DNA of 62,613 nucleotides, the filler included, from Choristocarpus tenellus KU-1152 (lineage: Eukaryota; Protista; Phaeophyceae), in assembly GCA_964200185.2 (NCBI GenBank). It is 11 parts of 11 records of this genome, joined end to end, with 100 filler letters (N's around TTAATTAATTAA, not from the genome) between each part and the next. Parts side by side here need not be neighbours in the genome. Positions count along the whole stretch, not along the records: positions 27,477 to 30,141 come from CAXNAD020025829.1; 10 more parts are not named here. The stretch is one strand, 5' to 3'. A model generated the notes under the pieces. It ran no database searches. It had not been told where the DNA came from and was given only the letters and a program-made list of their open reading frames with translations. This document shows positions 4,065-31,146 of this stretch, in pieces; positions within the stretch are counted from its first letter, which is position 1, and each line of letters starts with the position of its first letter. The position numbers and the translations under genes are program-made.

Positions 4065-6859
4065 CTCGCCTTTGACTTCAAATACATCTCCATAGAGGCA
4101 GCTATGGGAGACTGGACCTATTCTCTTCGCAAGAGTTGTCACATGTCCTTTTATTGTTCCAGCATTATCCAGGATACACACTCCGCTCTTGTTCACCTTC
4201 ATCAAGGCACTGTAGAGCCCGTCATCCTCATTCATGTATTTTCCTGCATCCACCTTGCAGTGTGGGCCAAAACAGGTAGGCAAGGGAAGGAAGGCAGGCA
4301 GGGCCGGGGGAAGGGCATATTCAGAGAAAATGGACTAGTGTGGAATTATAGTGTGTCGGATTTTGGCATGCTTGTGATCACAACTCTCTTCCTAGCCTGG
4401 CCATCCCTCTGACATGTGCACAATTTGTAAAAAGCAATTTCATTCGCAAGCCATTACACTGTATGGATAACATGAACAGTACATCACTATTTCTTCCACC
4501 GCAGTACAGAATAATCCAGTTAAGAGGGATTACTCTAATTCAAATAAAGTCACTTTGACTTGTGATAAATAGAAAACAAATTTCTCCCATGGAATTTTGA
4601 AAAATATTACTCACAATGAAAGACATGGATATTTCTTCTTCTCAAATCTAAATCCTTTTGAAATGTCAGCTTGTAAGATCCTTTTCCACATTCTATACAA
4701 TCAACTATCGCCATCTATCATGATGACGTGAACCTCAAATTTTGGTCAATTACTTGAAAATTTGCATCGGGTATTTTCTTGTTGCTAGGATACAAAAGAA
4801 TAACCGCTGGAGACGTTTGGGCCTGTAAGTCAAGGTGCACACAATCTTCTCAACAGCATTTTCACCCAGACAATTTTAGTTCGCACTCTCTATTTTGACA
4901 CCAAACTTTATATACACTTTATACTGATTGATTCAATTGAGAGTACAATTGTTCTGCTGAGCTGACGTTCGATTAATCTGGGAATTGGACTTGACTTGTA
5001 CGTCCTGGAAAGGTGAGCATCAAGAGGCGCCTGTAACAGTAGGAGGCTACAACGTAGAGACAGGCAACTCCACTCATTTCCAAGTCAGATGAAAATAGAT
5101 ACTTTTCATATGTAGGCACAGATTTGAGGGTAATCTTCCGGCTCTCTGTCCAAATTCCTGATCGACCAGAAAACTTAGGAGACGCTAAACTTTCAATTAC
5201 GAGCCAAAGTATCTTAGAGGGTAGAGCTGCGCTCATTTGGGAGTCAAAATCCAACGTTGCGATTTTGATATAATTTTGCCCATTGTATTTGTTAGGAAGT
5301 GTCAATATCCATGTTCTGGACACACCTTTTCATAACATATACACTTGGCCTACTCCGAAACATTTTGTAGTAGGAAAATGTCATTAAAAAACCTATGGGA
5401 AGCCAAGTCCCAAATGGACAAACAGGGCAAAACTAGTACCCTCTAAGATACTTTCACTCTTACTTTTCCCAGGCTGAGTGGAACCTCAAGTGTCAAGGGG
5501 ACATTTCGTACACCTAATAAAGTCAACACTTGATGTCGTGACCAATTTGTTGTTGTTCATGAGCGATTAAAGACTCAAGACCTTCAAAGCACTTTGGGAG
5601 ACTTAGACTGAATCAGCTTGTATACTACACCAGTACAGCAAAAATAGAGAAGACATTTACTGCATTTAGAATGTGTACACAGAAATTGAAGAAACACTTG
5701 ATGCATCACTACCCATTCAGATACATCACTTACTCCCCCTTCCTCACCTTAGGGAAGGAGTCCCAGGAACAAAGGGGGACCGGCCAACTTCCATGACTAC
5801 GGTCATGCAAGGCATCAGGGGAGTTGTCATGGGCCCGCAGCCAGCTAGCTTGAAAACGACTCACGTGATCATCTGACCAGATAATGTCAACGTCCCCTGA
5901 GCCTTCTGATGTCACGATCTGCAGCAATGGGAATCAACAGCAGCATACATCATGAAGAGATCTCCAACCAGCATAATGAGCAACAATTGTGTGGAGAGAG
6001 AGAAGTGCTGGGTCATTCGAAGAACAGAGAAAATATAGCGCGATCATGAGCAGAGGGAGCAGGTGCTTGAGGGGGATACTGTCAGGATCTATCTGCACCT
6101 ACCCTTGATACCATCGAGTAGATAAAATATACCTTATACTTCCTCGATGTAGAACATAGGTTTTAGACAGATGAGAAAGCTTCAACAAGCTTTGACTGCA
6201 TGACAAGAGCCGTCTCTGGAAGTTTCGCCATTCTTCAGCATCAAGACTACTTCAACAAATGCAACCTACTTATGTGAGGCCCTTGACCAATCACTGTGAT
6301 CAACACTCTCACATCCTAGTTGGGACAGGCATATCACTCACCATTGGCGGTTCTTTCAACATTCAACAAACATTAAACTTACATCAGGTTGATAGGTCGC
6401 CCAATCATGACAAAGTCAAGCCGCAACATGCACCCGACAGAGAACAGATGAATAAGAAGGGATAGCACCTCTTGTGACTACTACACGATTAGCATATTAA
6501 ACATCACATAGAGTCTGAAAGCGATTCACACAAACCTCCTTGGGGATGACAGCTCCGTCGATGTCCCCTGGAGACTTGATCCTTTGTCCAGAACTGTGAC
6601 AATTTGAAGGGCAGTTGACGCGCAGCCAAATGAAGTTGTACATCGACGTGTGCCCATCATGCCATTGCACTTGTACAGCACGCCAGCTTTTTATCACCGC
6701 GGTAGCATCTATGAGTACAGTGCTCCTCCGCATGTAACTATGGTAGTCAGCTGAAACGATGGACATGGGAGACATGTCACTGAAAGAGATCGATACTCGT
6801 CGTCTAGCACGAAAGGAGTTCACCGCTATACCTCTCAAAGCTCGGGAAACGAGTGTCAT
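4065..6859 (-). CDS. Gamma-butyrobetaine / trimethyllysine dioxygenase-like (GBBH-like N-terminal domain plus start of TauD domain), 3'-partial; exons 6859-6536, 5918-5748, 4253-4065
   Basis: Motifs VQWHDGHTSMYNFIWLRVNCPSNCHSSGQR, IIWSDDHVSRFQASWL and IGPVSHSCLYGDVFEVK are typical of BBOX/TMLH. All exons are phase 0 with GT/AG. The Arg-rich N-terminus resembles a mitochondrial transit peptide. Confidence 0.85.
5201..5459. mobile_element. MITE family A, 259 bp, in intron 2 of the dioxygenase gene
   Basis: TIR GAGCCAAAGTATCTTAGAGGGTA ... TACCCTCTAAGATACTTTCACTC with 4-bp TSD TTAC/TTAC. Homologous to 52357-52615. Confidence 0.92.
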
Positions 6860-27007: not shown

Positions 27008-28064
27008 CTGGCACCAGTCCCCGAGTCGACATTGTGGATACAAGTGGTCATGAAATCGATGCAGAGTTAAACATGCATGAGAGGGAGAGTTGGTTTATAA
27101 GAGGAGTAATTAAGATTCAAGTGGAGGATAAGTATTTATATATGAGGATTGAGCCGATGGTCTTATATATGTGGGAAAGATAATATTCACTGAGAGCATC
27201 ACACAAACCCCACTGTTCACCGTTTCTATGAAACAGTGTTACAAGGTTTCCTTATTTCTCCAAGATACCCTAAACATAGTACATGTACAAACGGGCTCAT
27301 GAAAAAGACCTGCAGTGACTCAAAGTATCGGGGGGGGGGGGGGGGGGGTGGTCTATTGTGGGTGAAAATTTTTTTGNNNNNNNNNNNNNNNNNNNNNNNN
27401 NNNNNNNNNNNNNNNNNNNNTTAATTAATTAANNNNNNNNNNNNNNNNNNNNNNNNNNNNNNNNNNNNNNNNNNNNAAGGAGAGGGGTGGAAAAGAGAGT
27501 TAAGTGAGGGTTAGGGGGGGGGGGGGGGGGGGGGGGGGGATCGATGTCAGTTACAACTATCCATATGCTTTGTGTCTAGTGGTACCTAGTAATATCTGTC
27601 TCTCTCATTCTTTGCCGTGAGTATGGTGTGTGTTGAAACTTCTTACAAATATTGATCAATAGGGTGGTAGTAAGGATGACGTTTGACCGATATACCTGCA
27701 GGGTTGGCTTGGTGTGTAAAGTGAGTCTGACTGAACTTTGCCGGATTGACTGCCGGATTGGTGCAAAGCCCACCCAATCAAGTGAATAGAGCTAGCCCAT
27801 GCTGTTTTTCCTCACCCAAAGATTGCAAGCAGGCAAGTCGTCACCTCTATTCTTTTTTTTTCTTAGTCTCCTTTTTTTTATCATTTCATTTCATTTTATC
27901 TCATTTCATTTTATCTCATTCCAACTGCCTACCTCTCCCACTGTAGCGACAGCTGTGCAGCTTCTAGATATTTCAATGATAAACAAAAAAGGAACAACCC
28001 ACACCTCTTCATCTCCCTTCCCGTCCCTTCTTGCCACTCGATGTCAAACGCCTTCCACGTTCAG

Positions 28065-28424
28065 TCAAGCTCCGACTCCAACTATCGTTGCGTTGGCCCT
28101 CTCCCTGTCCTCCTTGCTGATCTTCTTGTGCTCAGCCGGATTGACCAAGCTAAGCATCCTCAACTTCCAGGTTCGATGCAGCAGAGACTGAAGTGAAGGG
28201 CAATCAATGCTTGCGATGTTTAAATATATAGTTTAAAAGAAAAAAAACAATCTTTTGCTGTCATGTACACTCCGTGTATTGTAGAAAGATGGATGGCGTG
28301 CTTGCATACTCTTGTACATGAACCTTGAAGTCTAGTGTTCATCAAGTAATTAGCCGGTCGACTGTTGCCTCAATGGGCGGTAAACCTAGCCTCCTCCCCT
28401 GCTCTATTTCCCCTTGCCCTGCTG

Positions 28425-28478
<54 letters not shown>

Positions 28479-28677
28479 TGTGTTGCTTGCTCAGGAGTTA
28501 TCCTCTAGTGTGGAGGGTACCCCAATCTGGGACATCTGCAGCTGCTGCACCCCTCACGAGGATGGAGACAATATTGAAAAGATTTTTGAGATTCTTGAGG
28601 CAAGTTTAGGGTTAGGGATTATGGTTAGGGATACTTGCGCTATCTCATGCAATCTGTGTTGGTGTACAATTTCTTTT

Positions 28678-28721
<44 letters not shown>

Positions 28722-30105
28722 GCGTTTTATCTCTTCTCCCAGTTGTGTGCTTCTGCTTGAACCTTCCTCCCTTCCTCTCTCCCCCCCCAATACACAGGAC
28801 CAGCTCGGTTACTCATGTCGTGAGTCGTTGACAGGGCTTATTGCCTGGCTGGCATACTGGATCTGTCCTGTTATGTTTATCCTCTACTCATGCCGTATAC
28901 TGTGCTTCAAGTGAGTAAATAGCTCTTCACCTGTGGAAGTAAGTATCAAATGGTATCAAATGGTATGAAATGGTATCCATACCTGTTCCCACTGTACTTT
29001 AGATGTGTCTATAGCCTGTGACAAAACTAGGATGGCGTTGTCACCTTTGCCGGTATCAGTGTACCGTTGCCCCTTGGCTTGACTTCCCTTTCCTCTTTGC
29101 GACCTCCAAGGCAAAGACAACATGGATGGTGATTTCAGTTGTCGGTTGCAATGTGATGATCCCTATCCACCCCTGCAATGTGATGATGCCCTTGCCGTGA
29201 ATCCAGAGAAACGCCTTTTTTTTGTAGGAGGACGAATGTGTCCCCTCCTCCCTCCCCCCTCCCCCCTCCCCCCTCTACCTTTGGAGTCCAAGAACATGTG
29301 TTTGAAGCCCAACTTGTACCACACGGTGATAACCCTAACCCTAACCCTAGCCCTAATCCTCTGCTGATCCCTAAATCCTAACCCTGAACTATCACAGGAA
29401 CATTGCTGTCAGAGGTGCCCCCCAAGAAACTGCAGGCCCCAGCAGACGTGGTCGTATGCCCAGACAGCACCAATTCTGTGAGAGCCAAAGGTACTTGAAG
29501 AGCAATGCACCAGATCCTTCAAGGTGCGGTGGTAACTGGAGACAAACCGGGAGAGAGGTTTTGTTTGTATGCTGGATGGCCTGTTGTTTTTTTGTTCTGT
29601 AGTGTGTTGAGAGGTAAAGCCTCCCCCTCCCCCCTTTCCTATGTCATCCTTTTTTAAAATTTTGTTTTTGTCCCACTGTTGTTTTGATTGGCTGTGTATT
29701 GGACGAGGTTGTTTTTGTCTGATGATGTATTCCTACTTCGTCGACGAGGGTCAGGTCAGCGTGGAGAGAGCAACTGGTAACAGTTTCGCTTTGTTTTGAT
29801 TGGTCGTCTTCAATGCGGTTGAAAAAAAAACAAAAACAATTTGTCTCTGATTGCTGAGTGATCATTCTGCATCTTGCCTGGTTTGTTCCGGCGGAGCTAT
29901 TTGTCTTATCCTCTTCACCTTGTACACTTCCCTTCATGCCCCTGATCACATGCGTGTGTCGCTTGGACTCTGGTCTACAATGCAACAGGATTGGGAGGCA
30001 CCCAACCCATGTCTGGATCAAGCTCAGCGCCATCCTCAATTTTGTGTCAGGAATATTATACATTCGGTGGCGTGCAGTTGATTCCATGCCTGATGACCCT
30101 CTGGT
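28065..30105 (+). CDS. Membrane protein, internal part: FTR1 iron-permease-like C-terminal segment followed in frame by a cellulose-synthase (GT2)-like first TM segment. Exons 28065-28170, 28495-28599, 28798-28910, 29398-29523, 29989-30105
   Basis: LLIFLCSAGLTKLSILNFQE...PIWDICSCCTPH...IFEILEDQLGYS...LTGLIAWLAYW follows the FTR1 C-terminal pattern (AAGL...W...CC.P...F.il..l.G/Y...Y..YW). IKLSAILNFVSGILYIRWRAVDSM fits the YxxWR TM motif of BcsA-type synthases. Phases 0,0,2,2 chain without stops. Confidence 0.65.
28433..28474. repeat. (TG)n microsatellite. Others at about 28684-28719, 30559-30581, 31244-31265 and 37097-37111
   Basis: Direct reading. Most lie in introns near splice acceptors. 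Confidence 0.95.
29330..29386 (+). repeat. Interstitial telomere-like (CCCTAA)n tract just upstream of a splice acceptor
   Basis: TAACCCTAACCCTAACCCTAGCCCTAATCCT...CCCTAAATCCTAACCCT, ending about 11 nt before the AG at 29397. Confidence 0.85.
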
Positions 30106-31146
30106 GTGAGTGATGGGGACTGGGTAGTATAGGATGGGGGGNNNNNNNNNNNNNNNNNNNNNNNNNNNNNNNNNNNNNNNNNNNNTTAATTAATTAANNN
30201 NNNNNNNNNNNNNNNNNNNNNNNNNNNNNNNNNNNNNNNNNAAGATGAACAATAAAAGGGCATCAAATCAGAGCTTCACACCCAGGGACTTTTGCGGGGG
30301 TGGGTGGGTGGGGGGAGCCACAGACCAAATAGGAAAAATACCCCCCAACTTCTGTTGACCGTTGGAATTGGAGTTTAGTAGAGGTGTGTTGTGTTACGAT
30401 ATATATACTGTACCACCTAAAGTGAGACCCTACAATAAGAGCACGGCTTGACTGGGTCATTTCGCGTTCAACTTTACAAAAGGGCACGACGAGTCTCATT
30501 TTTTTTTTTCTTCAAGTCACAGATTTTAAAAACAAGAAAATAGAACCGTGTGTATGTATGTGTGTGTGTGTGTGTGTGTGTCCTATGCTAAAGGGCACTA
30601 AAGAGACAATAAACAGCAGGACGACACATCGCACCGGTGGACTCTAAGCGATCACTCTAGTCCAGAAGAAAAGTACAACAACTCAATCAAACGAGCGGCG
30701 AGATCTCAGCAGCAGGAAGAGGGAAGGGAAGAGGGAAGGGACCCTTCAGTTCAAATGAACTCTCGACCAAAACTCCACAGACAGAGCTCAAACAATCAGG
30801 AATCACCACACAGAGTCCGGTTGTACCTGTGTACCAGGGGGGGGGAGGAAGCTGCAGTCTCCCCACCCTGGTAATGGGTAAAATCAAAAAAAAAAAGAGA
30901 GCACGTACACACAGAGGCGTGTTTTTCGGTGTGCATCGCACGTGGGAAACGCACATCAATCAAACACAGCATGCAGGGGGCCGGCCAGAGGCATAACTTT
31001 GTACCTTGCCCCTTCCTGCACGATACAGGTACACCAGGGCATGCATATAAATAAAATTTCAATGCGCTGCAGCAGCGATGCGCGGTATTGTCTTCGCAGT
31101 CTCCGACAAGGATTGGGGCAATATACACAAGATCAAGAAGACCAAC

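Follow-up and report, generated by a model that had tools for sequence, protein, structure and literature searches.

Among eukaryotic cellulose synthases, the main differences lie in accessory modules that determine the place and manner of assembly, such as the PH domain of the oomycete enzymes and the zinc finger of the plant enzymes. The red-algal CESA carries a CBM48, as cited in PMC8307928, and the published description of the dinoflagellate CesA1 (∼90 kDa) has no module of the permease type considered here. The iron permease Ftr1 is a seven-helix protein whose N-terminus is outside and whose C-terminus is cytosolic; its essential glutamates lie in helix 3, in the DxxE of outer loop 6 and in the REXLE motifs carried by helices 1 and 4 (PMC11817551). 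The same paper reports neither an experimental structure nor a purification of Ftr1. FTR1 modules tolerate domain fusion, as in the cytochrome c/FTR1 fusions of bacterial plasmids (Acidovorax pJG1, L097), in which the partner is N-terminal, periplasmic and redox-active, and acts in iron uptake. Here we describe a gene piece from Choristocarpus tenellus KU-1152 (Phaeophyceae; assembly GCA_964200185.2) that may join these two kinds of protein. The window is a stretch of 62,613 nucleotides made of 11 joined parts, and the piece analyzed occupies positions 27477-30141 (2.7 kb; CAXNAD020025829.1). Its DNA looks eukaryotic (G+C ∼46%), and its exons, all on the + strand, are termed E1 to E5.

We propose, with a probability of about 0.7, that the gene encodes a FTR1/EfeU-like seven-helix module fused N-terminal to a BcsA/CesA-type family-2 glycosyltransferase (GT2) synthase in one protein. 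Of the permease-type module, the piece would contain E1 as helix 6, E2 as the Cys-rich outer loop 6 and E3 as helix 7. E4, a basic linker of ∼42 residues, would lead from there into a pair of helices, encoded by E5 and by the following exon off the contig, and this pair would precede the cytosolic catalytic domain of a processive GT2. A preliminary description of the locus had placed a FTR1 module upstream of a wall polysaccharide synthase; both halves of that proposal are now supported, mostly through relatives.

Exon structure and transcripts

Joined, E1 to E5 form a single open frame without stops, and the resulting peptide is the one given previously. The frame alone is weak proof, because runs of 35-42 codons without a stop, bounded by AG and GT, often arise by chance. 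Contigs of public read runs (three runs, X1, X2 and X3, from one study) were aligned to the piece. In X1 and X2 the introns were covered like the exons, and diverged paralogous copies were also present. In X3 the depth was 58-1012 on exons vs 0-3 on introns, and the contigs were spliced; judged from this depth pattern, X3 behaves like an RNA run. X3 contig 17 (635 nt, depth 58, 0-1 mismatches) aligned to 28059-28167, to 28492-28597 and from 28796 onwards, joining E1, E2 and E3, so its source is the present locus or an identical copy. X3 contig 19 (358 nt, depth 1012) derives from a paralogue that is ∼95% identical; it joined E3, E4 and E5, and continued 31 nt past E5 into a sixth exon, which by eye reads ..PL/APVWNWFFFG. 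Both contigs were spliced at the predicted borders, the joints foreseen at 28910/29398 and 29523/29989 were both present in contig 19, and this paralogous transcript did not end after the third or fourth exon.

E1 (28065-28170) codes for a transmembrane (TM) helix (..IVALALSLSSLLIFLCSAGLTKLSILNFQ), has the donor CAG/GT and is spliced to E2 in contig 17. Its start was put at 28059 by the aligner, and the AG acceptor ends at 28064. Because contig 17 runs 360 nt 5′ of E1, with its end not on the piece, E1 is internal and not the first exon; a 21-nt word from the last 30 nt of this upstream part was absent from the window at ≤3 mismatches. The preceding exon lies off the piece, and 27477-28064 is the 3′ part of the upstream intron. 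E2 (28495-28599), with both borders in contig 17, codes for a hydrophilic Cys-rich loop (..PIWDICSCCTPHEDGDNIEKIFEILE), and E3 (28798-28910), with its acceptor taken from contig 17 and its donor from the paralogous contig 19, for a TM helix (DQLGYSCRESLTGLIAWLAYWICPVMFILYSCRILCF). E4 (29398-29523) is a basic hydrophilic linker (NIAVRGAPQETAGPSRRGRMPRQHQFCESQRYLKSNAPDPS.) spliced to E5 at 29523/29989 in contig 19, and E5 (29989-30103) codes for a further TM helix (IGRHPTHVWIKLSAILNFVSGILYIRWRAVDSMPDDPL), with a donor GT at 30104, after which the transcript leaves the genomic sequence. The last two exons had been given as 126 and 117 nt: the length of E4 stands, whereas E5 measures 115 nt and ends at 30103, not 30105. 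The best 19-residue hydropathy means of E1 (2.27), E3 (1.99) and E5 (1.45) are those of membrane helices, and E2 and E4 are hydrophilic (E4 mean, −1.30).

Intron 1 (28171-28494, 324 nt, GT-AG) is absent from the spliced contig 17 and contains (TG)20. Intron 2 (28600-28797, 198 nt), removed at the joint 28597>28796 in contig 17, is of the GC-AG type with the donor GCAAGT; its borders had been placed correctly, but the donor is GC rather than GT. It holds TTAGGG-like units and (TG)21. Intron 2 is in frame and free of stops, so that E2, intron 2 and E3 form a 159-codon open reading frame (ORF; 28435-28914), and its retention would lengthen the product by 66 residues, a CVCV run among them, and leave the frame intact. 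Intron 3 (28911-29397, 487 nt, GT-AG), skipped in contig 19, carries short tandem repeats and a CCCTAA-like array, and intron 4 (29524-29988, 465 nt, GT-AG) is removed at the joint 29523>29990 in contig 19. The GC donor and the AG/G acceptors brought a dinoflagellate origin into consideration, which was set aside: the introns of the relatives described below are plain GT-AG, and the dinoflagellate CesA1 lacks a permease-type module. The (TG)n microsatellites lie at 28434-28474 (intron 1) and 28678-28719, short telomere-like TTAGGG/CCCTAA arrays lie inside introns at 28606-28632 and 29330-29360, and a 10-nt tandem repeat occupies 28943-28977. A G26 homopolymer near the contig end (27514-27539) is possibly an assembly artefact. 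A Rfam scan of 27477-30141 gave no match.

Between the copies, 5 synonymous and 14 non-synonymous codon changes were counted. The first 38 nt of E4 (29399-29436) could not be aligned to the contig 19 paralogue, although it is of equal length there, and the rest of E3-E5 is 93-97% identical; the linker thus shows a local burst of divergence between copies. These data are best explained if the piece comes from the interior of a nuclear eukaryotic gene that is expressed, is present in multiple copies and codes for a large polytopic membrane protein.

Relatives and the glycosyltransferase half

Searches and alignments were run exon by exon, including the in-frame E2-intron 2-E3 read-through, and E5 was the query of the exhaustive protein search. 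Ten matches were obtained, all of them short ORFs from Logan/ENA assemblies that were 59-66% identical along the whole exon, and a profile search added one further relative, giving 11 clusters of raw-assembly proteins with 59-74% identity. The family is therefore rare in the searched collection, and known there from unannotated genomic fragments only. P0002 and P0003, the top two entries of the E5 search, were dropped as repeat proteins whose matches consisted of several short segments. The residues H, P, WIKLSA, N, G, YI, WRA, S and P of E5 are invariant, with the W and the R fixed in 12 sequences.

Two relatives, L005 (16.6 kb) and L099 (5.5 kb; E5 74% identical), carry counterparts of E1-E5 on one strand and in unchanged order. 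Both also have the next exon (exon 6), which in L005 reads VWNWLFFAGE, in agreement with the run-on of contig 19. A third relative, L010, has counterparts of E2-E6. The E1 counterparts lie at 4473-4544 in L005 and at 2030-2137 in L099. The E2 counterparts in L005, L010 and L099 retain [WF]-[DN]-I-C-x-C-C and ..FF/IF..I[FL], E3 is 41-56% identical to its three counterparts, and E4 is weakly conserved (29-33%). Four cysteines are invariant in all four lineages, namely those of C-x-C-C in E2 (28537-28548) and the one after GY in E3 (28810-28818), which suggests disulfides or a metal site in the putative outer loop.

Exon by exon, the glycosyltransferase half was compared with the BcsA protein of the annotated E. 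coli K-12 record by Smith-Waterman alignment with shuffles. E5 of the window aligned over all its 38 residues with BcsA 190-228 (..CRYIWWRYTSTLNWDDPV; z 1.7), and its counterparts aligned at the same site with z 7.0 (L005) and z 4.1 (L099). BcsA 190-228 is the helix ending RYIWWR...DDPV directly before the GT domain. The exons that follow exon 6 in L005 read VCIMVPTAGEK...VLDEKG; KAGNMNAAI...NDARH...VQTPQRF; IEDTHTS; and KQ/VFRWHIGAVQ. They aligned to BcsA strictly in order, at 275-318 (z 4.7), 340-392 (z 3.6), 448-477 (z 6.0) and 493-508 (the QxxRW site). L005 exons matched TIGR03030 (CelA) with E 0.022 and 0.098, at profile positions 216-268 and then 324-353, and further matches were to PRK11498 (E 0.045), Cellulose_synt (PF03552; E 0.08) and Glyco_trans_2_3 (PF13632; E 0.016). 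The GT2 family matches were the top or only match of the respective L005 exon, and they were colinear.

The view that the YxxWR of E5 closes a helix preceding a BcsA/CesA-type GT2 domain, put forward from the motif alone, is borne out by these comparisons, with E5 as the predicted helix. The REXXE motifs and the D,D,D,QxxRW core had been expected outside the contig, and they are indeed off it; in L005, REGLE was found, and VLDEKG (first D), NDARH in place of DxD, IEDTHTS and QVFRW are colinear with BcsA.

The permease-like half

Upstream of the E1 counterpart, L005 carries on the same strand three exons that read ..VEDYFTGVFRILGALVF..; ..GASLREGLESYLYMIPLGGAYESKNIPLPAVLG; and ..GPGAIAGLLAARYLAPALVWGG... 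One of them (L005:447-566), here called the REGLE exon, reads ...LREGLES...PLP..LG, and its only NCBIfam match was the EfeU/Ftr1 model TIGR00145, with E 0.033 at positions 128-159 of 282 (helix 4). Its score was 13.8 bits; the whole-protein cut-off of 303.8 is out of reach for a single exon. The E-value is conservative, because FTR1 had been named beforehand while the E-value corrects for 18,950 models. With a local FTR1 profile the REGLE segment ranked first of 335 translated segments. L005 retains, in addition to REGLE, an acidic residue in the helix-3 exon.

Three exons of the relatives were colinear with E. coli EfeU, with shuffle p-values of 0.0005-0.01 that were chosen from ∼70 pairs and are modest. 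The REGLE exon aligned to EfeU 126-157 (173/20000), the following L005 exon (TM5; G-A-x-x-G-L...WGG) to 153-173 (211/20000), and the L099 counterpart of E3, without gaps, to the last helix at 237-267 (FGYTCAETLAGLVSWVCYWVYP.. vs FGYQEAPSVSEVAVWFIYLIPA..; 9/20000). The last alignment fell on the same columns in Paroceanicella EfeU (246/20000), and in its register E3 of the window keeps GY, S, W, Y, I and R. E1 of the window aligned best at EfeU 184-203 (the ..AAGL.. helix), with the same columns in Calothrix and Acidovorax, but not significantly. E2 was not placed in the bacterial FTR1 proteins compared, and a five-sequence bacterial FTR1 profile with hhalign was too weak to place E2 or E3. Taken together, the comparisons are consistent with E1 being a FTR1-like TM6, E2 the extracellular loop 6 and E3 TM7.

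At the position of the loop 6 DxxE, the start of E2 reads SSVE in the window, DSDE in L099, DSGD in L005 and DSTFE in L010; an acidic patch is kept, and the strict motif occurs in L099 only. Loop 6 of yeast Ftr1p has a W-H-V-N-C-C-N-P stretch, to which the W..CC.P of the preliminary description refers.

The exons for the predicted helices 5 and 6 are separated by three hydrophilic acidic exons (L005:1249-3872; L099:106-1731), which are common to L005 and L099 in the same order and 41-57% identical. They contain, for example, FKDSNVDPE..; SI.EDEDGYIDRGGYS..; and GGNMALGS..RS..RS. They matched no family, and no such insert was found at this place in E. coli EfeU and four other FTR1 members. Because these exons are conserved in order in both relatives, the stretch from the REGLE exon to E1 is coding, and the two halves are tied into one gene.

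Other searches were without useful outcome. Pfam and NCBIfam gave no match with each window exon or with the read-through, and Pfam gave nothing new with additional L099 and L005 exons. A PDB sequence search (E5, read-through, L005 exons and EfeU) returned nothing useful, no FTR1 structure being present there, and an ESM Atlas feature search gave no usable match. A word-index protein search returned a single match with the read-through, caused by translation of the CVCV microsatellite and rejected, and nothing with L005:3-329. A JGI metagenome scan with the E4-E5 alignment as query found no relatives, and an EfeU-query scan of genome contigs returned Enterobacteriaceae only. No description of a fusion of FTR1 or iron permease with cellulose synthase was found in the full-text literature searched; annotated proteomes may hold one.

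Alternative explanations and implications

Several observations speak against a single fused protein. The link of the window exons to FTR1 is transitive, from the window to L099 and L005 and from these to EfeU. The REGLE exon was found in one relative only (L005), and helix 1, which would bear the first REXLE, was not seen in any sequence, L005 beginning at its contig end. No window exon alone matched a GT2 model in Pfam or NCBIfam, and all profile matches of the relatives are far under the curated cut-offs, as expected of single exons. On the side of the transcripts, X3 is not recorded as RNA, the strongly expressed contig 19 comes from a paralogue and not from the present locus, and the E3/E4 junction, hence the link from E3 to E5 and E6 in this organism, was seen in that contig only; no transcript covering the region from REGLE through GT2 was seen. 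Finally, L011 (1-11609), a contig of an ENA metagenome, matches E5, E6 and the first GT2 exon, and no counterparts of E1-E3 or of the loop exons were found in the 10 kb upstream of its E5. L011 may represent a paralogue that is not fused or that has another N-terminus; an ankyrin-repeat ORF is located at 4513-5148 of this contig.

A cellulose-synthase-like gene could carry extra N-terminal TM helices unrelated to FTR1, with the REGLE exon contributed by a neighboring permease gene and the W..CC.P and GY...W..Y likenesses arising by chance among hydrophobic segments. This would fit the finding that no window exon alone matches the FTR1 models PF03239 (Pfam) or TIGR00145, and that neither hhalign nor the local profile places E2 or E3 significantly; in addition, the best EfeU match of the window E3 is a different W-rich helix. 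However, three exons of the relatives, among them the REGLE exon and the L099 counterpart of E3, match EfeU colinearly. A neighboring FTR1 gene would also need to miss helices 6 and 7 at the very place where two helices and a loop are provided by E1-E3, and in L005 as well as in L099 the gap is occupied by conserved coding exons of the same strand. We consider this explanation quite unlikely. That the window holds a silent or decaying paralogue, the protein being made from other copies only, seems very improbable: the depth of contig 17 and its near-perfect match over correctly spliced E1-E2, five open exons with intact splice sites, and the retention of family-invariant residues all oppose it, even though the family is multi-copy, the deep contig 19 stems from a different copy, and the differences between copies are mostly non-synonymous.

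The fusion might also be real and the GT2 make chitin, a hyaluronan-like polymer, mannan or mixed-linkage glucan, or be a dead scaffold. The profile scores are weak, and the motifs of L005 diverge, with PTAGEK for PTYNE, DEKG for DDG and DAR for DxD. The last of these may mean that catalysis is altered or lost in this copy: in L005 (10312-10587) NDARH stands where BcsA reads FDCDH, the second Asp being replaced by Arg at this one locus, which could reflect catalysis without metal, an inactive enzyme or a peculiarity of one paralogue. Both informative exons nevertheless had cellulose synthase models, and not chitin or hyaluronan synthase, as their top match, and KAGN, QTPQRF, ED-HTS and Q-x-x-R-W fit the BcsA pattern, so that this alternative is judged unlikely as well.

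We therefore retain the fusion of a FTR1/EfeU-like module with a BcsA/CesA-type GT2 synthase as the favored reading. Such a protein would be topologically coherent: the linker E4 should be cytosolic, as is the C-terminus of Ftr1 (PMC11817551), and the two extra helices would bring the chain back to the cytosolic side, on which the GT2 must sit. In the organism of the window, the whole FTR1-like module and the GT2 domain are probably in one polypeptide, and the product of the enzyme would be a β-glucan such as cellulose. The module may still bind metal, as suggested by the REGLE and helix-3 acidic residue of a relative and by the four invariant cysteines. The preliminary description had suggested that it might couple metal transport or sensing to wall synthesis, or act as a membrane or oligomerization module. 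We favor the view that it acts within the synthase, as a domain for regulation or assembly, and not as an iron importer in its own right.

The predicted protein resembles FTR1/EfeU permeases (yeast Ftr1p, E. coli EfeU) in the LREGLES followed by PLP..LG and in the next helix with G-A-x-x-G-L...WGG (L005), and in the last helix starting FGY...W..Y (L099), all colinear with EfeU. Unlike them, it would continue past helix 7 into a glycosyltransferase, it has in the relatives a hydrophilic acidic insert between helices 5 and 6 that is spread over three exons and several kb, and its loop 6 carries an invariant C-x-C-C, with SSVE for the DxxE in the window. With BcsA and CESA proteins it shares a TM helix ending Y-I-x-W-R...DDP before the catalytic domain and, in the relatives, KAGN, QTPxxF, ED-HTS and QxxRW in the BcsA order; it differs from them in the N-terminal seven-helix permease-like module, in the DAR of L005 and in a divergence so strong that single exons stay under all profile cut-offs, and no PilZ domain or zinc finger was seen. 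As in the CESAs with lineage-specific modules, a different N-terminal module would stand on a common catalytic core, but the CBM48, PH and zinc-finger modules are soluble and cytosolic, whereas the present one would be integral to the membrane and transporter-like. In contrast to the bacterial cytochrome c/FTR1 fusions, the partner here would be a C-terminal polysaccharide synthase.

The family is known here from raw-assembly fragments only, and has probably been missed by annotation pipelines. More speculatively, and rather doubtfully at present, the genes would form a conserved and strongly expressed family in little-sampled, partly marine eukaryotes, in which a still metal-binding FTR1 channel is built into the synthase, with metal occupancy or flux gating glucan synthesis or ordering synthase arrays; under such metal gating, the Arg in place of the second Asp of DxD would reflect an altered use of metal in the active site. 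If the fusion is true, this is an unusual fate for a FTR1 permease. Among the accessory modules of cellulose synthases, one of transporter type with seven helices would represent a new class, and it could bear on the linear terminal complexes found outside plants.

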